IMG/VR virus record: IMGVR_UViG_3300028920_000022
Coordinates: 124,001 to 188,000 of that record
Length of the DNA: 64,000 nt
Strand: one strand, 5' to 3'
Shown in pieces: positions 5,620 to 62,714 of this stretch; within the stretch, counting starts at the first letter, position 1, and the number at the start of each line of letters is the position of its first letter. The position numbers and the translations under genes were made by a program. The notes under the pieces are model-generated. The model did not search any database, was not told the origin of the DNA, and worked only from the letters and a program-made list of their open reading frames with translations.

Positions 5620-5916
5620 GTGGTGTGCTGTCCACTCTGCAAAAGAAAAGATTGCAATTTTAGCGATCATCATCTAGTTCCTCGCTCACGTGGAGGAACA
5701 CGCCAGGACACCGTTCCTATTTGTTTAGATTGCCACAACGGTGTACATGCGTTCTTTACCAACAAAGAATTAGAAAACGAATTCAACTCTGTCGAGGCGT
5801 TACTGGCTGACGAACGTTTTGCCAAACATCTAAGATGGCTGGCAAAACAAAACCCAACAAGACGTCATCGCTCCAAAAGAGTTCGAGACAAAAAGAAAAG
5901 AAACAGAAGTGGGTGA
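5620..5916 (+). CDS. HNH endonuclease-like protein
   Basis: CPLC...HHLVPRSRGG...CLDCHNGVH. Confidence 0.85.
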   Translation: MVCCPLCKRKDCNFSDHHLVPRSRGGTRQDTVPICLDCHNGVHAFFTNKELENEFNSVEALLADERFAKHLRWLAKQNPTRRHRSKRVRDKKKRNRSG

Positions 5917-32755: not shown

Positions 32756-33820
32756 ATGGATTGGCGAGAAAATAAAAGAAAATCTATTCTTCCACACTTT
32801 AAAGGCGAAGGAAAGTTTCTAAAATCTGTTCAAGAAGGCAGATACAAATTAGATATTTATCGCTACGGAACTAAACAAGGATGTTGGGAATATACTCAGG
32901 GTAGAGTATATAGAGATGGTAATTTTGTTACAAATGTTAATCGCAACTATAGTAGTTTTCCATTTTCTTGGATTGTTGGACACGCTAACGGTCATGATTA
33001 TTTAGTTGCCGGAGAGGACTATCAGGGACAAACTATAATCGAATTAGATACAGGAAAGCGATCCGACACTTTACCAGAAGATGCCGAAAAAGGTTGGGGG
33101 TTTTGCTGGGCAATACACAAATACTTCCCTAAACAACAAATTCTAGTAGTTGATGGATGCCTTTGGGCTTGCCCATATGAGTTTAGATTCTACGATTTTT
33201 CTGATCCGTTGAATTTTAAAGAAATTAAATATGAGGATGATTGTATATTGTCGGATGGTAAATTTCCAACGTTTGAATCCGATGGGATAATTCGTTGTTA
33301 TCAATTAGACATACAGCTGAATGATGGTGAGGATTGCGAAGACGACGAAGAGATTGAAAAAGCCATTGTTGCTCACAAAGATTTCAAACGTATTGGAAAC
33401 AAATTAGAATTTCAGAATGAATGGGTTTCTGAGGAAGAACAGGTTAGGCGCAAAAGAAGCCAAGAAGCCTGGGATCGTCGCGAGAGGGAAATAAAAGAAT
33501 TTAAGGAAAAAGATTCTCTTTATTTGTCTTACTTGGAGAATCTAAAAGATGGTACTCTAAGCCCCGAAAATTCAGAAGGTTGTGGAGTAACTTATAATGG
33601 TTGGTGTCCTAATTTCGACGTTGAAGAACGTCGGTGGTGTCGTCGAATAATTAAAAATACAAAAGGATATACTGTTGATTTAGATTGGGGAATTAAAACT
33701 GGACCAGTTAAATTAACTATATTCAAAAACGGGAACCATTTAGAAGATAAGTTTTGGATGGAACATTCTGTACAAAGTATAAACGATGCGTTTGAATATG
33801 CCAAGGAACTAATCAAATGA
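32756..33820 (+). CDS. hypothetical phage protein
   Basis: ~354-aa ORF; GFCW, VDGCLWACPYE. Confidence 0.75.
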   Translation: MDWRENKRKSILPHFKGEGKFLKSVQEGRYKLDIYRYGTKQGCWEYTQGRVYRDGNFVTNVNRNYSSFPFSWIVGHANGHDYLVAGEDYQGQTIIELDTGKRSDTLPEDAEKGWGFCWAIHKYFPKQQILVVDGCLWACPYEFRFYDFSDPLNFKEIKYEDDCILSDGKFPTFESDGIIRCYQLDIQLNDGEDCEDDEEIEKAIVAHKDFKRIGNKLEFQNEWVSEEEQVRRKRSQEAWDRREREIKEFKEKDSLYLSYLENLKDGTLSPENSEGCGVTYNGWCPNFDVEERRWCRRIIKNTKGYTVDLDWGIKTGPVKLTIFKNGNHLEDKFWMEHSVQSINDAFEYAKELIK

Positions 33821-34458
33821 ATAATCCTTTCGAAAAAGTTATTGATGCTGAAACTGAAGAAACTTTTTCTGATCATTTAGTGATTGATGAGTTTAGAGGG
33901 AAGAATGAATTTCTTTCTAATTTTTTCATGCGTCCATTTCAAACCGATATAGAGTTTATAGATGAAAATGGCGAGCACCAATGGATTACAGAAACATTTC
34001 AATCTGTTGAGCACGCATTTCAAGCGTCAAAAGTATTTGATCGTGATGTTCAAAAGGTAATTCGTGATGCCGCAACGCCCCGAAAGACTAAAAAATTGGG
34101 TAGAAAAGCTAGATTGCGTCCGGATTGGGAAGAAGTTAAAGTTGATATTATGGAGAGAATAGTTTCCGATAAGTTTGCGCAACATAAAGATCTTCAATTG
34201 CGTTTGTTATTTACTGGAAACGCCGAGTTAATTGAAGGAAATACCTGGAATGATGATTTCTGGGGCGTTATTAATGGAAAAGGTGGCAAAAATCATTTGG
34301 GTAAGATTTTAATGCGGGTGCGAGATCTTCTGACCGAATCTTTAGGAGATTTTGAAACTGTTTTCAAAGGGTTTTTAAGCGATAATCATTTGGGTTTTTT
34401 GATTGGACATTTTAACTGGGAACAAAATAATGAGCAAGAAACGTCAAGCGGTTGTTAG
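33817..34458 (+). CDS. NADAR (YbiA-like) family protein
   Basis: FLSNF, SVEHAFQASK, RPDWEEVK..M..KFAQH, LIEGNTWNDDFWG, NHLGKILM. Confidence 0.93.
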   Translation: MNNPFEKVIDAETEETFSDHLVIDEFRGKNEFLSNFFMRPFQTDIEFIDENGEHQWITETFQSVEHAFQASKVFDRDVQKVIRDAATPRKTKKLGRKARLRPDWEEVKVDIMERIVSDKFAQHKDLQLRLLFTGNAELIEGNTWNDDFWGVINGKGGKNHLGKILMRVRDLLTESLGDFETVFKGFLSDNHLGFLIGHFNWEQNNEQETSSGC

Positions 34459-34669
34459 AACGGTTGTGGTAGAAAAGAATCCTAATTCCTACAGCAAAGC
34501 GTTGGAGGAAGTTAAGAAGGTTTCTGGATTCACAGCAGCTCTTCCTTTGAGAGCTGCTTCTGCAGGAGCTGCGGTGGAATACGAGTTTCTGGTTTCTGAC
34601 GAAATGTCTGATTGTGAAACGGAACTCATGACCATGCGTTTGGAAGCGGAAGGTTTTGGGAGGCGTTGA
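34430..34669 (+). CDS. hypothetical protein
   Basis: Operon-packed ORF. Confidence 0.6.
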   Translation: MSKKRQAVVRTVVVEKNPNSYSKALEEVKKVSGFTAALPLRAASAGAAVEYEFLVSDEMSDCETELMTMRLEAEGFGRR

Positions 34670-34875
34670 TGAAAAAGATTGGCAAGATTCTAAACAAATT
34701 GGACAGTAAAAAAGCAAGAATCATTAAAGATAGAATCTCCAAACTTGCTGATAAGTGGGATAAAGAAGCCGATCGTCTTGCTGATGAGGCTGAAATGCCC
34801 TCAGCTGCTACAATAAATAAGTGTGCAGATTGTCTTCGTAGATTTGCCGGAATAGAACCGGATGAGAATAGATAA
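34666..34875 (+). CDS. hypothetical protein
   Basis: SD GGAGG upstream. Confidence 0.6.
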   Translation: MMKKIGKILNKLDSKKARIIKDRISKLADKWDKEADRLADEAEMPSAATINKCADCLRRFAGIEPDENR

Positions 34876-35176
34876 AAAAACCATAGTCGATAATATTTAT
34901 AAACACCTTGGGAAAACTTTATCAAAAAATCAAATCTATGATGTGGTTACAGTAATTTGTGACTATTTGTCAGAAGAATTAATAGAAAACCGTAGCGTTT
35001 CAATAAAAAACTTCGGCACCTTATCTCCCTATATGTTTCATGGGCATGAGGGGATAGATGTGTCGAGTGGAAATATGAGGTACGTGGAGGAGTTTCGGAG
35101 TGTGAAGTTTCGTCCACACCATGTTTTATGGCGCTTGGTGAAGAGGAAGAGGAAAAAGATTCTCAGAAAGCGGTAG
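34862..35176 (+). CDS. HU/IHF-like DNA-binding protein
   Basis: LSKNQIYDVV..LSEELIENRSVSIKNFGTL..VKFRP. Confidence 0.8.
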   Translation: MRIDKKTIVDNIYKHLGKTLSKNQIYDVVTVICDYLSEELIENRSVSIKNFGTLSPYMFHGHEGIDVSSGNMRYVEEFRSVKFRPHHVLWRLVKRKRKKILRKR

Positions 35177-35223
35177 AATTCTGTAGGTTTGCTGGCTGTG
35201 CGAAAGAAAAGTGAACGAAGGCG

Positions 35224-35252
35224 TTGACAAAAGCAAAACGATCGGCTAGATT
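35224..35252 (+). promoter_or_regulatory. sigma70-like promoter
   Basis: TTGACA-17-TAGATT. Confidence 0.7.
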
Positions 35253-35302
35253 CGAGCACGCTAATCGAAAGCACCCCAGAAATTCTAACAGGAGAAACAA
35301 AT

Positions 35303-35803
35303 ATGGCGAAACAAGAAACTCAGAAGAAGAAGCCAGGTCGTAAGCCTGGAACGAAGTCACCTCGCAATATCTATTGCCTGTGTGTTGGCGTGGTTGAGGC
35401 GGAGCTGCAGGTCGAGGAGATTCAGGTCGAGGGAGATAAGAACTCCACCGATAAGGATCTGTTGGCACAGGCTTCCGATAAGTTCGAGGCACTTCATGGC
35501 GAGGCACCAGAGGAAATGAAGGGTCCGTATTTCCAGCGCAAGGGTCAGCAGACCTATCAGCGCAAGCGTGATTCGATCAAGATTGATACGGACGACCTCG
35601 TTTTCAAGCCCGACAAGGCTGTTGCTGAGTACAATGGCTGGGAGGTTGCGGTTCGGTATATCGAGAACTTCGATAGCGCAGCCTACATTATCTTCAAGCG
35701 TCAGCTGGATGATAGTGACAAGAAGCGTGCCAAGCCCGTGCCGAAGACGGTGCCCCTTGATGCGCTGCAGAATGTGCGACCGCAGGAAAGCGCTAGCGCA
35801 TAA
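35303..35803 (+). CDS. hypothetical, probably highly expressed protein (basic N-terminus)
   Basis: Own promoter, SD AGGAG, terminator; markedly GC3-rich codons. Confidence 0.75.
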   Translation: MAKQETQKKKPGRKPGTKSPRNIYCLCVGVVEAELQVEEIQVEGDKNSTDKDLLAQASDKFEALHGEAPEEMKGPYFQRKGQQTYQRKRDSIKIDTDDLVFKPDKAVAEYNGWEVAVRYIENFDSAAYIIFKRQLDDSDKKRAKPVPKTVPLDALQNVRPQESASA

Positions 35804-35821
35804 GAAAAACAAACCGAAACC

Positions 35822-35865
35822 CATGAAAGCCTGGCTTCTAAAAGAAGCTGGGCTTTCGTGTTTTT
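35822..35865 (+). terminator. Rho-independent terminator
   Basis: CATGAAAGCCTGGCTTCT-aaa-AGAAGCTGGGCTTTCGTG followed by TTTTT. Confidence 0.85.
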
Positions 35866-35928
35866 GTGGGATAATTTTGAAATCGAGCCGGCTGAGAAAA
35901 ACAACTATCAATATTTTCACAGCATGGC

Positions 35929-36282
35929 ATGATTATGCGAAAAAAGTTGAACGAATTCAAAAAAATATTCCTTGCTAGGCGTGCTCAATTATTGGAACAA
36001 CTGAATAGAGATACTTTCTTGGACACCGAAGGTGATGATGTTGATTTAATCCAAGGAAAGATATTACATTCAGTAACGGAGAAGCTTTCAGCCAGAGAAC
36101 TTGCGGCTCTTCGTAGAATAGATTTGGCTCTGGAAAAAATCGAGTCAGGGGAATTCGGAACTTGTGAAGAATGTGGTGAGGAAATCCCAGAGAAACGTTT
36201 GATGGCTCATCCGGAAGCTAGCACCTGTATTTCTTGTGCTGAACATCTGGAAAAAATTGAAAAGCAATATGCAAGTGGTTGA
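35929..36282 (+). CDS. DksA/TraR family C4 zinc-finger protein
   Basis: Coiled coil with GDDVD tip; IDLALEKIESGEFGTCEECGEEIPEKRL..PEASTCISC. Confidence 0.9.
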   Translation: MIMRKKLNEFKKIFLARRAQLLEQLNRDTFLDTEGDDVDLIQGKILHSVTEKLSARELAALRRIDLALEKIESGEFGTCEECGEEIPEKRLMAHPEASTCISCAEHLEKIEKQYASG

Positions 36283-36352
36283 TATTACAAAAGAAAATCA
36301 CATTCTTTTAAGTCAAACACAGCATAAATAACCATAGAACAGCAAGGTAACT

Positions 36353-37009
36353 ATGAAAAAAATGAGCTTTGTCCATCCCATGATTTATGAAAAGACACGG
36401 GATGGGGAAATGTTATATGATGTTTATTCGCGCCTAATAAAGGAACGCATAGTTTTTCTAGCAGATGAGGTGGATGTGGAGGTAGCAACAACGGTAGCTG
36501 CTACCTTTTTGTTTCTGGACAGCCAGAGCAAAACGAAACCAATCTCCCTGTATATTAATTCCCCTGGCGGTTCTGTACATGATGGGCTGTTTACCATTTA
36601 CGATGCCATAAATTATATAGAGTGTCCTGTTAAAACTGTGTGCTTAGGTGAGGCTGCTTCCGCGGCTGCAACAATATTGGCTGCCGGTTCACCCGGAATG
36701 AGGTTTGCTACTCCTAATAGTTTAATCATGATTCACCAGTTGCAGATTTCAGATTTGTCTGGTAAAGGAACAGATGTAGCAAAGGAAGCAGAACGGATTA
36801 AAGAATGGAACGAGAGATTGTTTCAAACATTAGCCCGCCATACTGGGCATACTACTGAGGAAATTGCTCAAGTATGTAGAGATGATACGTATTTTAACGC
36901 AAAACAAGCTAAGGAATTCGGTTTGATTGATGAAATTGTTGAACCGAAGAAAAAGATTCCCGATTTAATTACCCAAACCCCAAAAGCAAGACGGAAAAAG
37001 GGTTCGTGA
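36353..37009 (+). CDS. clpP: ATP-dependent Clp protease proteolytic subunit
   Basis: YDVYSRLIKERIVFL, YINSPGGSV, AASAA (catalytic Ser), IMIHQ, RDDTYF..EFGLIDEI. Confidence 0.95.
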   Translation: MKKMSFVHPMIYEKTRDGEMLYDVYSRLIKERIVFLADEVDVEVATTVAATFLFLDSQSKTKPISLYINSPGGSVHDGLFTIYDAINYIECPVKTVCLGEAASAAATILAAGSPGMRFATPNSLIMIHQLQISDLSGKGTDVAKEAERIKEWNERLFQTLARHTGHTTEEIAQVCRDDTYFNAKQAKEFGLIDEIVEPKKKIPDLITQTPKARRKKGS

Positions 37010-37018
37010 TGAGCCTGA

Positions 37019-37459
37019 ATGTATGACGTATTAGTTAGTTTACGATCCAGATTAAAGTTTTATATATCTAGACTTAGATGTGATGCTTGTTATGCACCAT
37101 ATTCTAAACATTGCTCAATATATTTGTGCGAGTCAGGCTCCACATTTGAACAAAATAAGAGCAAATTTTCCATTGATTCTAAACCATCTGGTCAACCAAT
37201 TTCTTTTGGAGCCAGGTTCCCCATTACCTGGAACTCAGCAACAAGTCGACACTTATATACTAACGCTTTGCAAGCAGCCCGGTTAGTTGCAAACCCAGAG
37301 AAGGAAAGAGTAACTAGAAACGTTTTGTCCTTGGAGGTTTGTTGTAGTAGGTGTAATAATTTTAAAGAATTGGAAATAGATTTAGATGATTTTTTGCCAA
37401 AACAATATGGGAAAGCGTCTGTTACTCGGGATTTGAGTTATCCTGATGAAGAAGAATAG
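37019..37459 (+). CDS. Cys-rich hypothetical protein
   Basis: CDAC...CSRC. Confidence 0.6.
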   Translation: MYDVLVSLRSRLKFYISRLRCDACYAPYSKHCSIYLCESGSTFEQNKSKFSIDSKPSGQPISFGARFPITWNSATSRHLYTNALQAARLVANPEKERVTRNVLSLEVCCSRCNNFKELEIDLDDFLPKQYGKASVTRDLSYPDEEE

Positions 37460-37835
37460 GCTACTTCGAGATTTGGATATTCCTAAGAATCGTGTGCGTT
37501 GCGATTTGTGTGGAAAAGAATACTCTAAAGAGATTATTTGTGGGTATTCTATGGGTAACGTTAGGGATTATAGGTTTCGTTATAGCTTCGATTCTACGCA
37601 CCTGCCGTTAATTTACACATGGACCAGCAGACATTGGCTGGTTCGTGATCCCAAATCAGTTAAACATATTTTTAGAAGACGCCGAATGTGTACAGATCTT
37701 ACAACCGTTGATGGGTTCTATCCATACCACAAAATAGCTGTAGAATTAAAGTGTGAGTGTGGTGGTTATAGGACGTATTTTATCAAATTAAAGCACATTT
37801 CTTCATCAACAATACGACGCAGAAGGGCACTCTAA
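37446..37835 (+). CDS. Cys-rich hypothetical protein
   Basis: CDLC...CECG; similar layout to previous gene. Confidence 0.6.
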   Translation: MKKNRLLRDLDIPKNRVRCDLCGKEYSKEIICGYSMGNVRDYRFRYSFDSTHLPLIYTWTSRHWLVRDPKSVKHIFRRRRMCTDLTTVDGFYPYHKIAVELKCECGGYRTYFIKLKHISSSTIRRRRAL

Positions 37836-37846
37836 TATTCTTGCAT
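37833..37846 (+). promoter_or_regulatory. candidate phage-specific promoter TAAT-N7-CAT
   Basis: TAAT-attcttg-CAT, 7 nt before ATG. Confidence 0.55.
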
Positions 37847-37853
37847 ACCAATT

Positions 37854-39341
37854 ATGGAAATTATTGCAAGGAAACGTTCCGAGGATCCAGCCCAGGAAAA
37901 GCTAAGGGAGCGCAAATCCCAATGGAACGCAGAGGTTAAAACCTTAATTGCACAACTTATTGCTTTTAAACGTGGATTAAATGGCAGAGGGGATCCTAGG
38001 GCAGGATTACCCCCGAGTAATATTAAAAACCCCTTTCCTAGTGAAATAGGTCAATACCTGGAAGAGATGGCAACGCGATATCAGAAAGTAATTACTGAAG
38101 CTAAACAAATTATATCTGAACAGTCTGATTATAGTCAAAAACGTCGCAAAGGAAAGAAAGAGATGCCTTTTCCGGTTGCGGCAAGCGTTGAGAATGAAAT
38201 AGAAAAACAGGCGTCTTGGTGGGGAAGTAGAGCCTGGACATGGTTCACTCAGTATCCTATACTGGGTGGAAAAGATGCAGACAGGGATCGGATAGCCTTG
38301 TTACATACTGCTACGGCTTTGATTGATTATATTGATGAAACCGAGGAAGATTTATCTAAAGGCGGTGATGACGCAATACCTTCTGCTGTATATAAATTAT
38401 TAGCAATGCATCGTGTATTTGATATGCGGTTTATTAAGATATTTAACCGCATGATGGTTCGTCATACTCAGGTAGCTGAAGAAAAAGCCCCTACTGAAGC
38501 ACCAGTTTCGCCTGAAGCAGAACCGGAAAGCTATTTTTCTCCACCAGTACCGGATGAACCTAAGGAAGCACTGAGGATATTGGAAGATTTGTTGCTGATT
38601 GATATACATCACGTTAAGAAACTGTTAGATATTGTGAAGCAGTTGAAAAAAGTGTCGCCGGAAGAATACAAGGGTTTGTATCGAGACTATGAATTGATCG
38701 TGAAACTAGGAGGAGAAACTAGAGCACGATTGCGAGTAGCTCAAAGAAGCCCGGATGATACAGAAGAGCTGGCTTCGGCAATGTCTCTTTATAAAGATGT
38801 ATTAATTCGGTACAATAAAGTGTTAAATATATTTAAACGGGCATTGGGAGTTAATGGAAATAGATTCAGAACTTTGTTGGAGCAAGCAGAAGAAACTTAT
38901 AAGAGGGAAATTTCTGCTATGTACGGTCCTGAAATAGAAAAATTAGCCCAGAAATCTCTTAAACGGTGGTGGCGCAGAACTCGGTTGGGTCTTTTCCCGC
39001 GCGAAGAAGACAGAATGAAACGAGATGTTTTGTTGAAGACCCAGGAATTAACTCGTTTATTGAATCATATGCAGGATTTGTTAGAAGAAAAGTATACAAC
39101 AGCTGCCCAAGTGTGGCAACATGTTGCTGATTCGTCCGAATTATTAGCTGAAGTATTTGGGATGATATTAAATCTTTCTGAATACCATAATGCAATGGAA
39201 GCTGATAAGAAATTAAAGAAGACCAAACAACCATCCACAAAAATTGATCGAGATAACCGCATTAAATTAACAAAGTGCCAGAAATATTATAAAGATTTGA
39301 GTAATTTCTTGCAACGAACCATGGGTTCCGCTGAGCAATAA
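37854..39341 (+). CDS. large helical hypothetical protein (candidate virion protein)
   Basis: Repeated EIEKQA / EIEKLA sites; motif upstream. Confidence 0.7.
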   Translation: MEIIARKRSEDPAQEKLRERKSQWNAEVKTLIAQLIAFKRGLNGRGDPRAGLPPSNIKNPFPSEIGQYLEEMATRYQKVITEAKQIISEQSDYSQKRRKGKKEMPFPVAASVENEIEKQASWWGSRAWTWFTQYPILGGKDADRDRIALLHTATALIDYIDETEEDLSKGGDDAIPSAVYKLLAMHRVFDMRFIKIFNRMMVRHTQVAEEKAPTEAPVSPEAEPESYFSPPVPDEPKEALRILEDLLLIDIHHVKKLLDIVKQLKKVSPEEYKGLYRDYELIVKLGGETRARLRVAQRSPDDTEELASAMSLYKDVLIRYNKVLNIFKRALGVNGNRFRTLLEQAEETYKREISAMYGPEIEKLAQKSLKRWWRRTRLGLFPREEDRMKRDVLLKTQELTRLLNHMQDLLEEKYTTAAQVWQHVADSSELLAEVFGMILNLSEYHNAMEADKKLKKTKQPSTKIDRDNRIKLTKCQKYYKDLSNFLQRTMGSAEQ

Positions 39342-39733
39342 TGGACAAAGTAGTTTTTGGAAAACATGAATTACCTACTTTAGTAGCCATTACTGAAGAC
39401 GAACAAGTACAAGGATTAATGTATAAGAGTTGGCCGCCACCCATAATGAGTTTTCCCTTTAAACAATCTAAAGTTCGTAAGTTCTGGATGAGAAACACTA
39501 TTTCTCCGTTAGATATTATATTTTGCCGCGGCAACAAAGTTATTTCTATAATATCTGGAGAACCGTTATCATTAAAACAGGTAGGTCCAGATGAACCCTG
39601 CGATTTAGTTGTTGAATTACCAAAGGGTACAGCTGAGAATATAGGTATTACTGCAGGTAGCATTGTTAAATTGCAGCTATCAACAAACACATTAGCTAAG
39701 AAATATGCAAGTTTTTTGAGCCAAATGAAATAA
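39341..39733 (+). CDS. DUF192 family protein
   Basis: QGLMY, FWMRNTISPLDIIF, VVELPKG..GI..G. Confidence 0.9.
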   Translation: MDKVVFGKHELPTLVAITEDEQVQGLMYKSWPPPIMSFPFKQSKVRKFWMRNTISPLDIIFCRGNKVISIISGEPLSLKQVGPDEPCDLVVELPKGTAENIGITAGSIVKLQLSTNTLAKKYASFLSQMK

Positions 39734-39742
39734 TTATCTTGC

Positions 39743-39771
39743 TTGACAAGTGCCCGAACTTACGATAGATT
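39743..39771 (+). promoter_or_regulatory. sigma70-like promoter, probably leaderless
   Basis: TTGACA-17-TAGATT; ATG 7 nt downstream. Confidence 0.7.
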
Positions 39772-39778
39772 GCTGTAC

Positions 39779-40156
39779 ATGACTACTCTAGCGAAGTGTT
39801 TTGGTGCGCTTGTTGCATCAGGCAACGGGTTTCAGTGCGACAATTTGCGGGTTCTACTCAGACAGAATCTGTTACTTACTGACAGGTTTACTGGGCAATC
39901 TCGTGTATGGTTACATAAGTTTGGTAGGAAACAATTTCCTAATTCACATAGACTTCTTCGTACAGAAATTGCAGAAGAAATAGATATTTTATACGAAGAT
40001 GTACCTACAGTTTTATTACAAAAGCGTATGGATCATGGGGCGGTTTTTACTCACGATCCAGTTTGGCAAAAAGAAATTGAATCTTGGCATTTCTCAGATA
40101 TTTTAGAAGATGCGATGAGAAAAGGAAAATGGAACGGAACAGTTGGATCTTCTTGA
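39779..40156 (+). CDS. hypothetical protein
   Basis: Start reassigned to ATG after promoter. Confidence 0.65.
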   Translation: MTTLAKCFGALVASGNGFQCDNLRVLLRQNLLLTDRFTGQSRVWLHKFGRKQFPNSHRLLRTEIAEEIDILYEDVPTVLLQKRMDHGAVFTHDPVWQKEIESWHFSDILEDAMRKGKWNGTVGSS

Positions 40157-40181
40157 CAAAAAGCTATCGTTCGGTTATTGT
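40153..40181 (+). promoter_or_regulatory. sigma70-like promoter, probably leaderless
   Basis: TTGACA-17-TATTGT; ATG 6 nt downstream. Confidence 0.65.
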
Positions 40182-40187
40182 TGCAGC

Positions 40188-41207
40188 ATGAATGAAGATA
40201 TCAACAAACTGAACGAAGTTCTGGTGGGTTATAAGATCAACGCTAGTTGTGTTGCCGTTAATCGGCACCGCAATTTAGCCATGTATGATATTAAACTTAA
40301 TCCGGGATGTAGGATTCGTAAGCTTGAGCTGTATGCTCGTGAGATTGCGCTGGCACTGAAAAGTAAAAACCCTACTGTAAGGGAAGTTCCTACGGAAGGA
40401 ATTGTTAGATTTACGGTTGCCGAACGTGACCCAGAGGTGTTACCATTTGAATCGCTGGCTGAAGGACCTCGACCTGCTGGTGTTTTGCCTTTGCTTCTAG
40501 GGGAGACCGAAACAGGCGAGAAGCTGTGGATTAAAATGGAAAAAAATCCACATCTACTTGTGGCAGGTGAAACCGGTTCGGGTAAAACTACCGTACTTCA
40601 CACGATTATTGCAAACGTTATTGGTCGTGAGGATGTGTGGCTCTATTTAATTGATCCGAAGAATGGGTTGGAGTTTGGAATCTACGAAAACAAAGCCTAC
40701 AAAATTGCATACGATTACGATGCGGCTTTGGATATGTTGGACGATATTCGTTTTAACATGGATATGCGTGGTAAATTCCTAAATGAAATTGGTAAGCGGA
40801 GTATTGAAGACGATCCTTCGATACTTCCTCCGGTTCTTGTAGTGATTGACGAGATTGCTGCTTTGATGTTGTGGGATTCTGATAAAAAGAACCCACAAAA
40901 AGGAAGTTTTGAAAGAAAACTGGTAGATATTGCCCAGCGATCCCGTTCGTCTGGCATTTACATTGTTTTGGCGACGCAGCGCCCATCTACGGACGTGGTA
41001 ACTGGGCTAATAAAAGCTAATTTTCCTGCTCGGATTGCATGCAGAGTCAGTTCTTCTGTGGATTCTAAGGTCATTTTGGATCAGACTGGAGCCGAAAACC
41101 TTACACCCAGAAGCCATGCTATAATTAGCAGTCCTGAATTATTTGCAACATTTAAAGTTGCTTATACTACAGCAGAAGACAACGTCAAGAGAACTCTATC
41201 TGTATAA
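40188..41207 (+). CDS. FtsK/SpoIIIE-like ATPase (alpha/beta motor only)
   Basis: PHLLVAGETGSGKT, LIDPK, VIDE, LATQRPS, IKANFPARI, DSKVILDQTGAE. Confidence 0.92.
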   Translation: MNEDINKLNEVLVGYKINASCVAVNRHRNLAMYDIKLNPGCRIRKLELYAREIALALKSKNPTVREVPTEGIVRFTVAERDPEVLPFESLAEGPRPAGVLPLLLGETETGEKLWIKMEKNPHLLVAGETGSGKTTVLHTIIANVIGREDVWLYLIDPKNGLEFGIYENKAYKIAYDYDAALDMLDDIRFNMDMRGKFLNEIGKRSIEDDPSILPPVLVVIDEIAALMLWDSDKKNPQKGSFERKLVDIAQRSRSSGIYIVLATQRPSTDVVTGLIKANFPARIACRVSSSVDSKVILDQTGAENLTPRSHAIISSPELFATFKVAYTTAEDNVKRTLSV

Positions 41208-41293
41208 TTAGCAGTTTCGTTGTCGAGAGGGTCACGGTTTTCTAACCCAAGCTTAGGCGAAAATACATTTGAACCTAAGCTCAGGGAGCTTGA

Positions 41294-42811
41294 ATGCAAG
41301 AAACGTCCACGATAGTTGAACAAATAAATGAAATTGCGCAAATTTTACAAGAGGAAGATTTAGATGAGTGGGTAGTACCACAACTGTTAGAGTTTTATTC
41401 TAGTAGAATAAACAGCTTAGCAATAAAAGCCTACGGACCTTCTGCTATTAATAGTGAAGGTCCCTCTCTTGCTCAGCTAGCCTTTAAAGAGCGTGCAAAA
41501 TCTGAGTTGCGTTCTGCTGTTTATACTTTTATTTTCAAATCTGAGCATTGGCGCAATGGTAGAGATATTAATACATATCTTTTAACTTGTTTAAATCGTT
41601 TGGCTGATAGAATTCGGTGGGATACTGATAGTATTAGAAAAACAAACACTCCCGTATGTCCAGCCGCCAAATATCTTCAAAGAAAAGAATTTTTAGTTCA
41701 AGAAGGAAGGTTGTTGCGGTCACAATTTTGTGTGGAAGAGTTGGAAAGAGCTACAGATGAAATAAAAAATCTGCGTAACAAAGAGGAGAAGACAGAACTA
41801 GATCATCAAATGTTATTAAAACTTGAGCTGCGTTCGCGTTTGTTTCGGGCATTTTCTTTACATTCTCGCAAAGGATATCGTTGTCCTGATTGTTTTAGAT
41901 TTATTCCTGAATCATGGAATGGTCCTAATGGTATTTCTTGTCCGTATGATGATTGTATGTTTGGTGGTGACATAAACAGCCTTGAGAGAATGGCACACCC
42001 CGTTGGGCTTACTCAGAGAACTGATCTTAGCCTGCAAACACCAATGTCCGATTCAGAAAGAGACAGCAAACAGATACAGGATACGTTTGTGGCAGAAGTA
42101 ATCGATGCGGATACGCGAATGGAAGTAAATGAAAACTTCAATGAAGAGTTTCGAGTATTAACTGACGTTATTGATGAGCAGGTAAATTCTATTAAACGAA
42201 CAAACTCTGCCGGAACATTGGTACAGAAGCTTCGTATGTACGAAGCATACAAAAATATGTTAAATAAATATCCAGAAGATATGGTGTCGTATTTGGTGCA
42301 CCGCAAGCAGAGTGCAGATTTTCCTATACAGTCTAGGATTTTTCAGGAATATGTTGGTTTAATGCAGGATACGTTGCCTTTTGAAATAAAGCGCGGGGAA
42401 GATACCTATGACGTATTATCTCTAACGGATCCTAATATTTCTTTATTCTTGGGCGTTTCTGAGTTTAATGCTACTGTTCGAAGCGATTTGACTATACCTA
42501 ACTGTACCACAGAAAGCTACATTGGAGGAAGAAAATTTAAAGATTATGGACCATGTTTTATTGGGATGATTATTGATGTTATTGATCGTAATGCTGGAGA
42601 ATCAATCAAGGACAAGATTAAAGAATATAGTTTTGTGCAGATCAAAATGCATGAAACTGTTGTGCCTGGAACACCAGTAAAAGTTACACATTATCGTATC
42701 CCGTCTCATTATGAGATGGGGAATCTCGTGTATCTTCAACGTGTGAGAAAAAAGATAGTAGACAAGGTTTACTATTTGATGCATGGCGAAAAGCGCGTGC
42801 CGGGAAATTAA
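41294..42811 (+). CDS. putative divergent RNA polymerase sigma-like protein with zinc-finger insert
   Basis: AVYTF..WRNGRDINTYLLTCLNRLA resembles sigma regions 2.3-2.4; LSLQTPMSDSERDSKQIQDTF resembles region 3.2; CPDC..CPYDDC. Confidence 0.45.
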   Translation: MQETSTIVEQINEIAQILQEEDLDEWVVPQLLEFYSSRINSLAIKAYGPSAINSEGPSLAQLAFKERAKSELRSAVYTFIFKSEHWRNGRDINTYLLTCLNRLADRIRWDTDSIRKTNTPVCPAAKYLQRKEFLVQEGRLLRSQFCVEELERATDEIKNLRNKEEKTELDHQMLLKLELRSRLFRAFSLHSRKGYRCPDCFRFIPESWNGPNGISCPYDDCMFGGDINSLERMAHPVGLTQRTDLSLQTPMSDSERDSKQIQDTFVAEVIDADTRMEVNENFNEEFRVLTDVIDEQVNSIKRTNSAGTLVQKLRMYEAYKNMLNKYPEDMVSYLVHRKQSADFPIQSRIFQEYVGLMQDTLPFEIKRGEDTYDVLSLTDPNISLFLGVSEFNATVRSDLTIPNCTTESYIGGRKFKDYGPCFIGMIIDVIDRNAGESIKDKIKEYSFVQIKMHETVVPGTPVKVTHYRIPSHYEMGNLVYLQRVRKKIVDKVYYLMHGEKRVPGN

Positions 42812-42885: not shown

Positions 42886-42915
42886 TTGATTTGCGCATAG
42901 CTTTTGTGGTATGAT
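42886..42915 (+). promoter_or_regulatory. sigma70-like promoter, probably leaderless
   Basis: TTGATT-18-TATGAT with TG; ATG 6 nt downstream. Confidence 0.6.
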
Positions 42916-42921
42916 TGCGTC

Positions 42922-44391
42922 ATGAAAATTAGAAACATACGTTTAGGTTTTGCTACCAACAGTTCTAGTAGCCATAGCATTGTTGTAATTAATGGTGGGG
43001 TTAGCACTTCTAATAGCAATGAACAAGATTTTGGTTGGGATAATTTTACTCTCGGCTCGTATAAATCAAAACTAGAATATCTAGGGCAAATATTAAAAGA
43101 ATCATTTTGTCGTTGGAATTCTTTAGGAAGTAAAGAAGCGGCGCTTCTAGCTAGTAGCTGGTTAGGTATTGATGTAGATCCGAATGGATATATTGATCAT
43201 CAAAGTATGTGGGTGATACCACGTGATTATAAAATTGACTCTTATTGGGGCGCGGGACATATGCCAAGCCGTGAGTTGGTTGAGGCGATGAAATGTGAAT
43301 TACACCGAAAAGATATAGTTATTTTAGGTGGTAATGATAATAGCGACGGACACCCGTTAGCGGATAACGATCTTGCTCCTGCTTTTGCAGGGTTTGATAG
43401 AGATTATTATCGTGGAGAGTGTATAGTAAGGCATGATGAAACGTATGATTATTGGACCATGTTTGATCACACTTCAGGAAATAAAGTAAGATTCAACTTT
43501 ACTGAGAATAGTATTACCAGAGCTGAAGCTCCTGAATTAGTGGATATAAAAATTACTGATAAATGTACCAGGAATTGTAAGTTTTGTTATCAGGATTCTA
43601 AAGTGGATGGTAAACATGCGGACATGTCAGTTATTAGAGAAATTATTAAAACCCTGCATGAAGTGAAGGTATTTGAAGTGGCTCTTGGTGGTGGAGAACC
43701 CACAGAACACCCAGAGTTTATAGCTATATTAAAGAGTTTTAATTCGGTGGGAATTGTTCCTAATTTTTCTACGCGCAATGTAAAATGGGTAAAAGACAAC
43801 ATAGAGGAATTACGTGATGCTGGTGTAGGCGGAATAGGTATTAGTGTTGATAATGTTGAAGATGTAAAACGTGTTCTTTTCCACCTACAGGATGTGAATA
43901 AATTAAATTCACAAGGAGAACATAAACCTTCTATTGTGTTGCATCACGTAGTAGGGGTTGCTCCTGAAAAAGAGTTTGTAGAAATATTAGAATTGGCTCA
44001 AAAGGTTGGATATAGACCATGGGGAGCTAGCGGATGGGCAAATAATCCCTTGCTCCTTTTGGGTTATAAAACTACCGGACGAGGTGGGCAATTTGTTCCG
44101 CATCAGTTTGATGTAATAAAGTTGCTCAAAAATCTTAAGAAAGAACAAGGGTACAACATTGGTGTAGATACGGCGTTTATTGATCAACATAAAGATGAAT
44201 TGTCTAAGCTTACCGATCCGATTTATTGGACAGCAGGCGAAGGTAACTTTTCATTTTATATGGACGCTGTGAACCATAAAATGGGCAACTCTTCATACGA
44301 TCCCTGCCTAATTTCTCTTGCTTTGGGAGATGAATTTAAGGAAATCTATGCGCTAACTCCTGAAGAGAGAATCATTAAAGAGATTGTATGA
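42922..44391 (+). CDS. radical SAM protein with N-terminal TNSSS domain and C-terminal tag
   Basis: IRLGFATNSSSSHS; CTRNCKFCY; ALGGGEP; ends LTPEERIIKEIV. Confidence 0.9.
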   Translation: MKIRNIRLGFATNSSSSHSIVVINGGVSTSNSNEQDFGWDNFTLGSYKSKLEYLGQILKESFCRWNSLGSKEAALLASSWLGIDVDPNGYIDHQSMWVIPRDYKIDSYWGAGHMPSRELVEAMKCELHRKDIVILGGNDNSDGHPLADNDLAPAFAGFDRDYYRGECIVRHDETYDYWTMFDHTSGNKVRFNFTENSITRAEAPELVDIKITDKCTRNCKFCYQDSKVDGKHADMSVIREIIKTLHEVKVFEVALGGGEPTEHPEFIAILKSFNSVGIVPNFSTRNVKWVKDNIEELRDAGVGGIGISVDNVEDVKRVLFHLQDVNKLNSQGEHKPSIVLHHVVGVAPEKEFVEILELAQKVGYRPWGASGWANNPLLLLGYKTTGRGGQFVPHQFDVIKLLKNLKKEQGYNIGVDTAFIDQHKDELSKLTDPIYWTAGEGNFSFYMDAVNHKMGNSSYDPCLISLALGDEFKEIYALTPEERIIKEIV

Positions 44392-45011
44392 TTGGGGACA
44401 TAGATAAACAATATTGGGCTAAAGGCAAATCTGTTGTTGGTTTCGATGAAGCCGGCAGGGGACCAATAGCAGGAGATATGTTTCTATCTTTGGTGGAATT
44501 ATATCCTTTAGAAGAGTTTCCGTTTGAATTAAAAGATTCGAAAGGATATAAAGATAATAAAAGATTAGAAATAGAACAGAAAATTATAGAAGCAAACGTA
44601 GTAAAAAATTATACTCTTTCTTCTGTAACTGTGGAAGAAATAAATACCGGGATGAATTTGAATCGTTTATTGCACCATGCTGTTTGTAATAAAATTATGC
44701 AGTTGATTGCCGGTGGACTTCAGATGCAGAACATGATATTGTTAGTGGACGGAAATCAACCCATTAAAGGATTACAAGATTCTCTGCAACATGTTCAACC
44801 AAAGCTAGATACATTGAGTTGGTCATGTGCTGTTGCTTCAATATTTGCGAAGAATGCTCAGGTGCGATCGATGCATGAATTGGACAAGAAGTATCCGGAA
44901 TATGGGTTTACATCTCACAAGGGATATGCTAAAGAGAAGCACTACGAAGCTATAAAAACATATGGGACATGCGAAGCTCATAGGGTAGGGTGGATTCATG
45001 CGAAGACTTGA
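44388..45011 (+). CDS. rnhB: ribonuclease HII
   Basis: GFDEAGRGPIAG, DSK, VDGN, ASIFAK, YPEYGF..HKGY, HR. Confidence 0.92.
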   Translation: MIGDIDKQYWAKGKSVVGFDEAGRGPIAGDMFLSLVELYPLEEFPFELKDSKGYKDNKRLEIEQKIIEANVVKNYTLSSVTVEEINTGMNLNRLLHHAVCNKIMQLIAGGLQMQNMILLVDGNQPIKGLQDSLQHVQPKLDTLSWSCAVASIFAKNAQVRSMHELDKKYPEYGFTSHKGYAKEKHYEAIKTYGTCEAHRVGWIHAKT

Positions 45012-45864
45012 TAAACTTGAGCAGGAACTGGATGATGCCATTGAGTCCAGGGAAATATTGTATGAACAGTTAGTTGAAGCCAGGCTTAAGCTACATTGTC
45101 TACAGAAACAGGCGAAGCTATGTGTTATATCGTGTGATGGCACGTCAGACGATGATAATGAGCCGGCTACGCTTGTCGCGCGTACCGTTGACCGCTTGAC
45201 TGCTGAGGTAGAGCGGATGCGTCCGGTGGTCGAAATAGTAGGACAAATGGTCGATCATCCGGAGCCCGATGAATGGGTAGCTCCACACCGTGGTCTTGCC
45301 ACCGCGTATGCGGCTTTCCGCGCCGCTGCCCCGAAGACCAAGCAACCGGAGCCGTGCGTGGACGACGATCAGCGCTGGTCTTTCGTTGTCGAATGCACGG
45401 GCGAGGACGGCGGGCAACTTGTGTCCAGCACATGCACCGGCAAGGTTCCCGAATCGTTTCTGGCACTGCGCGAGGTGGCACTATCGCTCGGCGAGGCGGA
45501 GTATTGTCCGTGTACAAAGCACGTGGACGCGGACACCGGCAAGCGCACCACGGACGATCCGAAGCAACCGGAGGCGGACGGGGAGGAGAAGTGCCCCACG
45601 GGGACTGCAGAACTTTCTTGGGTATGCATTCCTGGCACGGACGATTGGTTTTGTATTTTGGGAGACAAAGTTATAGCACAAGCAAGCCCTCCGCATGTAC
45701 AGACCTGTGGAGCCTGTGGACATAAACCCAAGAGCGAATGGGTATTAGTTTTGTACGAACAAGATGGGACTGTTGCGGAAAGCATGAAAGAAACTCCAGA
45801 TTTAGAATATGTGAAATATGCGGTTGGATTGTTTGCCGAAGAGGAATATGGAATCAGAAATTGA
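44998..45864 (+). CDS. mosaic hypothetical protein containing a GC-rich segment
   Basis: 288-aa ORF; ~45140-45610 visibly GC-rich. Confidence 0.65.
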   Translation: MRRLDKLEQELDDAIESREILYEQLVEARLKLHCLQKQAKLCVISCDGTSDDDNEPATLVARTVDRLTAEVERMRPVVEIVGQMVDHPEPDEWVAPHRGLATAYAAFRAAAPKTKQPEPCVDDDQRWSFVVECTGEDGGQLVSSTCTGKVPESFLALREVALSLGEAEYCPCTKHVDADTGKRTTDDPKQPEADGEEKCPTGTAELSWVCIPGTDDWFCILGDKVIAQASPPHVQTCGACGHKPKSEWVLVLYEQDGTVAESMKETPDLEYVKYAVGLFAEEEYGIRN

Positions 45865-46156
45865 AGTCTATTCGCTCGTCATGGAGGATCTTCATCCCCA
45901 CCCTATTCATGGTGGAGGATCATATTGTAGATTGTTCAGTACAAAAGAGAAAGCCATTAAGTGTGCGTGCGAATGGATTAAAGAATATATCGAAAACATG
46001 GACGAAGACATGATCGAGGTGTATTACGAATCAGGCGATTTGGATGAAGTGTTGGCACTTATTGCAAAAGAGAATTATACGTTAGCATACGATAAATATT
46101 CTGGATTTGCTGATTACGATGCTTGTCCTCAAGTACATAAAGAGCGAGTGATTTAA
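45848..46156 (+). CDS. acidic hypothetical protein
   Basis: SD GAGG; operon-packed. Confidence 0.65.
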   Translation: MESEIEVYSLVMEDLHPHPIHGGGSYCRLFSTKEKAIKCACEWIKEYIENMDEDMIEVYYESGDLDEVLALIAKENYTLAYDKYSGFADYDACPQVHKERVI

Positions 46157-62668: not shown

Positions 62669-62714
62669 CGGGATGTATGGGAAAAACCAGCAGTCTCGAC
62701 GCTATTCAGGCTGG

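Follow-up and report, generated by a model that had tools for sequence, protein, structure and literature searches.

Domain 2 of every sigma factor (sigma2), that of phage T4 gp55 included, docks on the beta' clamp helices of RNA polymerase (RNAP), and T4 gp55 further depends on gp33 and the gp45 clamp. A second group of phage factors, represented by AR9 gp226 and phiKZ gp68, consists of specificity subunits of the non-virion multisubunit RNAPs of jumbo phages. Among the cellular factors, the ECF (group 4) sigmas recognise -10 elements with the core GTC, as in the sigmaE/-10 complex 4lup, and SigI can be assigned to the sigma70 family from its sequence. Huge phages are, as far as we know, known almost only from metagenomes, and their takeover of host transcription is largely obscure. 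The protein of 505 amino acids analysed here is encoded in a 64,000-nt stretch of DNA (hereafter the window). The stretch corresponds to bases 124001-188000 of a virus record that is 458,729 bp long, is rated complete and was obtained from a marine-sediment metagenome whose sequencing runs are all of DNA. Judged from its predicted structure, it is a factor with a sigma2 fold and an undescribed domain layout that is conserved in one lineage of huge phages.

Among the described systems, the protein would work most like T4 gp55 (7d7d chain F), with which it shares a sigma2-like domain and the lack of sigma4. A first-pass annotation of the window had called it gp55-like; the architectural analogy stands but homology to gp55 does not, as the structural superposition shows 3% identity, neither Pfam nor PHROG links the two proteins, and tblastn in 50,697 phage records does not place the protein in the gp55 family. 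With 505 amino acids compared with 185 it is 2.7 times longer than gp55, which has no zinc ribbons, no coiled coil and no C-terminal alpha/beta domain. Some 390 further residues follow the sigma2-like domain, and gp55 has no counterpart of the domain that forms the largest and best-conserved portion of the protein. Whereas gp55 relies on its two partners, we know of no gp33/gp45-type dependence for the protein studied here.

The sigma2 domains that are closest in shape to the N-terminal domain belong to the ECF sigmas (SigW, sigmaE, SigK, and AlgU). Unlike these, the protein carries no sigma4 helix-turn-helix (HTH), continues after the sigma2-like domain with zinc ribbons and a coiled coil that together span ~150 residues, and matches neither Sigma70_r2 nor r4_2 in Pfam. 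The SigI-type sigmas (Clostridium thermocellum SigI6, 8i24) differ as well, in that the SigI C-terminal domain is not among the matches to the C-terminal half of the protein. Because the sequence-defined membership tests failed and sigma4 is missing, the protein is assigned to neither the sigma70 nor the gp55 family.

A phage-only protein family and its domain layout

The gene is an intact ORF on the plus strand (41294-42811, stop codon included) with an ATG start, as the first-pass annotation had it, and both peptides quoted there are present in the translation (residues 71-107 and 244-265). The genome of the virus record has a GC content of 39.5%, a coding density of 94%, genes that lie mostly on one strand, and a moderate use of Shine–Dalgarno sequences (35% of genes). 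The protein family comprises 232 clusters at 90% identity and 76 clusters at 50% identity. The 232 metagenomic relatives share 45-79% identity, and nearly all of them are ~500 amino acids long, unnamed, and located on contigs of at most 435 kb; a few are labelled RpoP or L37AE solely owing to a zinc ribbon. The family is confined to metagenomic phage contigs, the largest of 459 kb, and is found on 16 viral contigs in IMG/VR, several of them 266-435 kb in length.

An exhaustive HMM search of 1.84 billion proteins with a profile of the N-terminal domain retrieved 76 representatives with the same architecture, almost all of 450-510 amino acids with the domain at the N-terminus, and reached no sigma factor. 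Pfam and PHROG hold no family for the 505-aa protein, phmmer identified nothing significant among PDB sequences, and no relative was found in 50,697 deposited phage records (tblastn, megablast) or in 185,579 species genomes that were scanned with short patterns, which limits the sensitivity of that scan. A search of BFVD returned one uncharacterised 211-aa fragment homologue followed by weak phage sigma and adaptor rows, a word search with the C-terminal half returned family fragments only, and no description of the family was found in the searchable literature. Since the relatives are ~500 amino acids long and lie on phage contigs, and the HMM search finds the family only, the family is closed, restricted to phages, and fixed in its architecture. 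The gene is a conserved core gene of one huge-phage lineage, and the protein family is missed by all sequence-based annotation tools.

The domain layout was derived from an AlphaFold2 model based on 44 homologues (mean pLDDT 85.8) and from family alignments; all parts are encoded on the plus strand. A helical domain resembling sigma domain 2 (residues 1-114, 41294-41635, pLDDT ~90) is followed by zinc ribbon 1 (residues 115-146, 41636-41731; family consensus C122, C125, C143, and C146), an antiparallel coiled-coil hairpin (residues 147-188, 41732-41857), zinc ribbon 2 (residues 189-245, 41858-42028), a flexible, net-acidic linker (residues 246-271, 42029-42106), and the C-terminal domain (residues 272-505, 42107-42808). 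The middle region (residues 115-270) was compared with known modules within the full-length model.

The zinc-finger insert, the coiled coil and the CPDC...CPYDDC cluster described in the first-pass annotation were all recovered. The coiled coil corresponds to two predicted helices (residues 144-161 and 168-188, pLDDT >90) of poorly conserved sequence, with the lowest information content in the protein apart from the linker. Both ribbons contain two CxxC pairs, as in rubredoxin-like Cys4 knuckles, and several Zn_ribbon families of Pfam are weakly matched in many members of the family. The cysteine cluster belongs to ribbon 2, in which C197, C200, C216, C221, H235, and P236 are invariant, the four cysteines being retained in the 44 homologues and in 33 divergent homologues. 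Ribbon 1, overlooked in the first reading, is complete in the family and shows a weak profile match to the zinc ribbon in the largest subunit of plant Pol IV (E 0.009). In this copy, as in its closest relatives, two of the ligands are replaced (A125 and S143), and this copy of ribbon 1 therefore probably does not bind metal, as far as can be told from the sequence. The metal site looks recently lost, and the beta-hairpin fold is still predicted.

The linker is the least conserved stretch of the protein, with only S246 and L247 conserved, a length of 11-40 residues across the family, and a pLDDT of ~62. The likeness to the sigma 3.2 finger that had been seen in this segment could not be confirmed as more than a chance resemblance. 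The acidity of the linker (on average 4.5 acidic vs 2.4 basic residues) and its position do fit a sigma-type linker, although this does not amount to homology.

Conservation is highest in the C-terminal domain, with a mean column identity of 63% compared with 48% in the N-terminal domain. The C-terminal domain consists of a helical bundle (residues 272-360 and 477-497) with an inserted beta-barrel (residues ~363-472), in agreement with the earlier description of a beta-rich C-terminus without a plain HTH, and folds into a compact unit with 477-497 as closing helix when residues 272-505 are modelled alone (pTM 0.84). No likeness to sigma3 or sigma4 was detected in the domain and no DNA-binding HTH was found, so that a sigma4 HTH, which would serve -35 recognition and beta-flap binding, is missing; this supports the earlier remark that no region 4 is evident. 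Structure searches with the C-terminal domain (Foldseek against the PDB, VIA wide, and the Atlas fold search) retrieved only generic barrels and bundles, with the adaptor barrels of AcrA, MacA, and EmrA as the best rows. The barrel might be taken for a neck or adaptor-type module and the protein for a virion or assembly protein. This is very improbable, given that the matches span only a small generic barrel that the AcrA, MacA, and EmrA barrels match too, that the gene belongs to a non-structural module remote from the region with the structural genes, which lies at ~233-317 kb of the genome, and that zinc ribbons and a sigma2-like domain would be uncommon features for a virion protein.

Comparison of the N-terminal domain with sigma domain 2

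By prediction, residues 1-114 have the fold of sigma domain 2, the helical domain that carries regions 1.2-2.4. The structure search against sigma2 that the first-pass annotation had suggested supports this assignment: in a wide search against the PDB the best rows for the N-terminal domain were all sigma2 domains, and ~30 independent clusters of them, each covered end to end, outrank all other helical proteins. The matches include 4lup. Foldseek returned no significant match for the model, yet its list of weak matches is full of sigma chains. Superposition on 6p1k_L places residues 22-112 of the model over residues 375-447 of sigma70 with 19% identity. Residues 71-107, in which a likeness to sigma70 regions 2.3-2.4 had been noticed by eye, lie in the register of this superposition, but the likeness does not extend to homology with sigma70 at the sequence level.

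Sequence homology of the N-terminal domain to any sigma is not significant. The Sigma70_r2 profile (PF04542) matched neither the protein itself nor 44 full-length members, 33 divergent members, or 44 isolated N-terminal domains of the family at E<=10. Comparison of the family alignment (N-terminal domain or full length) with the canonical sigma factor of the phage by hhalign, as a single sequence and as a family, also gave nothing significant (probability 0.3 against the family). The sole PDB sequence at E<1 for the N-terminal domain profile was the ECF sigma SigW (E=0.026), which aligns in two collinear stretches that correspond to regions 2.1-2.2 and 2.3-2.4; the classical aromatic pattern for reading the -10 element is only partly retained in this alignment.

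Two independent pointers agree with the sigma2 fold. A protein-language-model search ranked a viral cluster that is 100% Sigma70_r2 in third place (score 0.92), and the conservation of the N-terminal domain peaks at residues 61-100, which superpose on regions 2.2-2.4. Within this peak Y95 is invariant, F64, F79, W86, R90, and L100 are strongly conserved, and H85 is included as well. Prediction of a complex between the N-terminal domain alignment and residues 215-345 of Escherichia coli beta', which contain the clamp helices, gave a score of 0.30 (mark 0.32) in a run without controls and was weighed neither in favour of binding nor against it.

If the likeness to sigma2 were coincidental, the zinc ribbons could identify a nucleic-acid-binding protein of DNA replication, segregation, packaging, or nucleoid management without any link to RNAP. 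This explanation is unlikely, as the structural match is specific, with sigma2 clusters ranked above all other helical proteins and covered over their full length, the SigW match is collinear, and the language-model search points to a Sigma70_r2 cluster.

RNA polymerase, gene neighbourhood, and a candidate promoter

No match to PF00562 or PF00623 (beta and beta') was found in the genome, no ORF of at least 400 amino acids contains a DFDGD or DxDxD catalytic motif, and the ten largest ORFs, several of which are still unannotated, include neither an RNAP nor a match to an RNAP PHROG. A series of unannotated ORFs of very large size (1,079-2,218 amino acids) surrounds a baseplate-wedge homologue at positions 274834-317748 of the genome; these ORFs are presumably structural and are the sole places where a cryptic polymerase could hide. 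Pairs of the sigma70 type (TTGACA-N-TAnnnT) are enriched upstream of genes (9 observed vs 2.2 expected). Because no RNAP of its own is recognisable and sigma70-type pairs are enriched, the phage very probably uses the host RNAP and re-programs it, which makes a role of the protein as a sigma for host RNAP plausible. A promoter-specificity subunit of an unrecognised phage-encoded RNAP, comparable to AR9 gp226 or phiKZ gp68, is highly unlikely given the missing beta and beta' domains and catalytic motifs: the split beta and beta' genes that co-occur with gp226 and gp68 were not detected in the genome, and the structural scores of gp226 and gp68 are lower than those of cellular sigmas.

The phage also encodes a small canonical sigma factor of 219 amino acids with sigma2 and sigma4 (weak Sigma70_r2 and r4_2 matches), located outside the window at positions 351278-351937 of the genome. 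The corresponding family comprises 54 clusters, many members of which carry PF04542 and PF08281, and one member each of the canonical sigma family and of the family studied here are present on the same 239,683-bp contig. The gene directly downstream of the canonical sigma gene encodes the large subunit of ribonucleotide reductase.

In each of the 16 related loci, with identities as low as 35%, the gene closes the same module, whose genes share one strand. In the window the order of the module (33817-41207) is NADAR, HU-like, orf166, DksA/TraR, ClpP, a protein without a family, DUF192, orf137, and an FtsK/SpoIIIE-like ATPase, followed by the gene for the 505-aa protein. The part from 35929 to 41207 (plus strand, annotated with Pfam) is collinear in 16/16 related loci and lies directly downstream of a strong hairpin that resembles an intrinsic terminator (35822..35860, plus strand; 18-bp stem and T run). 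It encodes, all on the plus strand, the DksA/TraR protein (35929-36282; zinc finger PF01258, E 2e-13), ClpP (36353-37009; Pfam), the protein without a family (37854-39341; 495 amino acids here, 500-680 across related loci), the DUF192 protein (39341-39733; Pfam), the small orf137 between the DUF192 gene and the ATPase gene, and the FtsK/SpoIIIE-like ATPase (40143-41207), which is optional across related loci. The 495-aa module protein has no Atlas feature match and a low-confidence Atlas model only. Two small Cys-rich ORFs (146 and 129 amino acids, several CxxC pairs) between the ClpP gene and the gene of the 495-aa protein (37019-37835) are present only in the closest relative (L004), which suggests that they were inserted into the module recently.

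The genes downstream differ between related loci. In the window, the next gene (42904-44391) codes for a radical-SAM protein of 495 amino acids (PF04055, E 3e-17; PHROG ‘Fe-S oxidoreductase’) that is extended at its N-terminus by ~200 residues without known function; the gene is missing at this position in related loci. Further downstream, a 288-aa ORF for which no family was found (44998-45864) lies in a GC-rich stretch (45% in the bin 44001-46000 vs ~39% elsewhere), where both strands carry long ORFs that overlap, which suggests DNA that is foreign or of odd composition.

The presence of a DksA/TraR protein, a secondary-channel type of regulator, in the module also fits an RNAP-binding protein that does not read promoters. 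Such a protein would act as a sigma2-like decoy or appropriator on the beta' clamp helices, where it would displace the host sigma or re-tune the polymerase together with its DksA/TraR-like neighbour. The same fold evidence applies to this explanation, a canonical sigma is already available for promoter reading, the aromatic pattern for -10 reading is incomplete, and the protein has no DNA-binding HTH. Against it, the best-conserved residues of the N-terminal domain lie in the loop and helix equivalent to regions 2.3-2.4, which in sigmas touch DNA rather than the core enzyme, and a large conserved C-terminal domain with two zinc ribbons exceeds the needs of a simple decoy. Overall, a regulator of this kind is considered rather unlikely.

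A candidate promoter element of the phage, GTCGAG, is located at 41222..41227 (plus strand), 66 nt upstream of the ATG of the gene. The hexamer is found upstream of the orthologous gene in 8 out of 11 loci with a gap of at least 40 nt, and in six further loci it occurs upstream of the DksA-like gene. With 79 copies in the genome GTCGAG is rarer than hexamers of the same composition (median 118), but in intergenic DNA it shows a 3-fold enrichment. The 4,044 hexamers that occur at least 30 times in the genome were ranked by the share of copies located no more than 100 nt upstream of a start codon in the same orientation; GTCGAG ranked first (28/79 copies, 35%; median of all hexamers 7.9%, 99th percentile 17%), ahead of the Shine–Dalgarno hexamers. 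The distances to the start codons cluster at 20-66 nt. The result was replicated in 266 kb of sequence from 14 related phage loci, where GTCGAG ranked second among 3,832 hexamers (18 of 61 copies, in 9 loci). Within the window, gene-upstream sites are located at 5791, 26063, 41222, 50460, 59473, and 63969 on the plus strand and at 62695 on the minus strand. Only weak signals flank the hexamer (A-rich from -18 to -14, T at -1), and no -35-like box is paired with GTCGAG.

A simple k-mer and dyad enrichment analysis identified only the Shine–Dalgarno sequence, TTGACA, and GTCGAG. The AAT-N7-CAT promoter that the first-pass annotation had proposed is not enriched upstream of genes (8 observed vs 10.5 expected) and was dropped. 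The T4 late element TATAAATA was observed 4 times compared with 1.2 expected, too few to matter. GTCGAG is a candidate for a clade-specific promoter or operator; it resembles a single-element promoter specific to the phage, as would be expected for a sigma that lacks region 4. By analogy, the GTC with which it begins recalls the core of ECF -10 elements. That the 505-aa protein reads GTCGAG is a hypothesis only, and the canonical sigma of the phage qualifies equally well as its reader.

Proposed role and implications

Taking the predicted structure together with its genomic context, the most likely reading, held at even odds, is that the product of the gene is a sigma-like factor made by the phage for the host RNAP and specific to this lineage. 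The fold matches, the SigW hint, the language-model match, and the conservation peak in the N-terminal domain were counted in favour of this role, as were the module with HU and the RNAP-binding zinc finger of DksA/TraR, the lack of a phage RNAP, and the single-element motif. Counted against it were the lack of significant homology to sigmas, a fold known from prediction only, a canonical sigma that could read GTCGAG, and the observation that the best-conserved part is the unexplained C-terminal domain and not the sigma2-like domain.

As a sigma-like factor, the protein would dock with its sigma2-like domain on the beta' clamp helices of the host core RNAP, A63 and F64 being part of the helix predicted to bind the core. 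Residues H85, W86, R90, Y95, and L100, which superpose on regions 2.3-2.4, would contact a -10-like element and help to melt it, and the acidic linker would run along the route taken by the 3.2/ECF linker of sigmas. As anchors on RNAP, DNA, or a co-factor, sigma3 and sigma4 may be replaced by the C-terminal domain together with the zinc-ribbon/coiled-coil module. The promoters of such a factor would consist of a single element, as expected because the protein has no -35-reading domain, with GTCGAG as the best candidate.

A more far-reaching and rather doubtful proposal is that the family represents an unrecognised class of initiation factors, a huge-phage sigma of a ‘sigma2-only plus zinc-ribbon’ type in which a new alpha/beta domain and the zinc-ribbon/coiled-coil module stand in for sigma3 and sigma4 and the host RNAP starts at GTCGAG, a six-base element present across the clade. 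If this were true, the order of zinc ribbon and linker would echo the layout of TFB/TFIIB, and the family would constitute a second independent solution to phage transcription without a -35 element, after T4 gp55/gp33/gp45. Should the protein act as a sigma2 decoy instead, it would represent a new way to shut off the host sigma. If it functions as a sigma, the protein would extend the range of architectures known for initiation factors of the bacterial type (sigma2, zinc ribbons, and a non-HTH C-terminal domain) and, together with GTCGAG, would provide a testable pair of phage promoter and sigma for reading the gene programmes of huge phages and an orthogonal transcription part.
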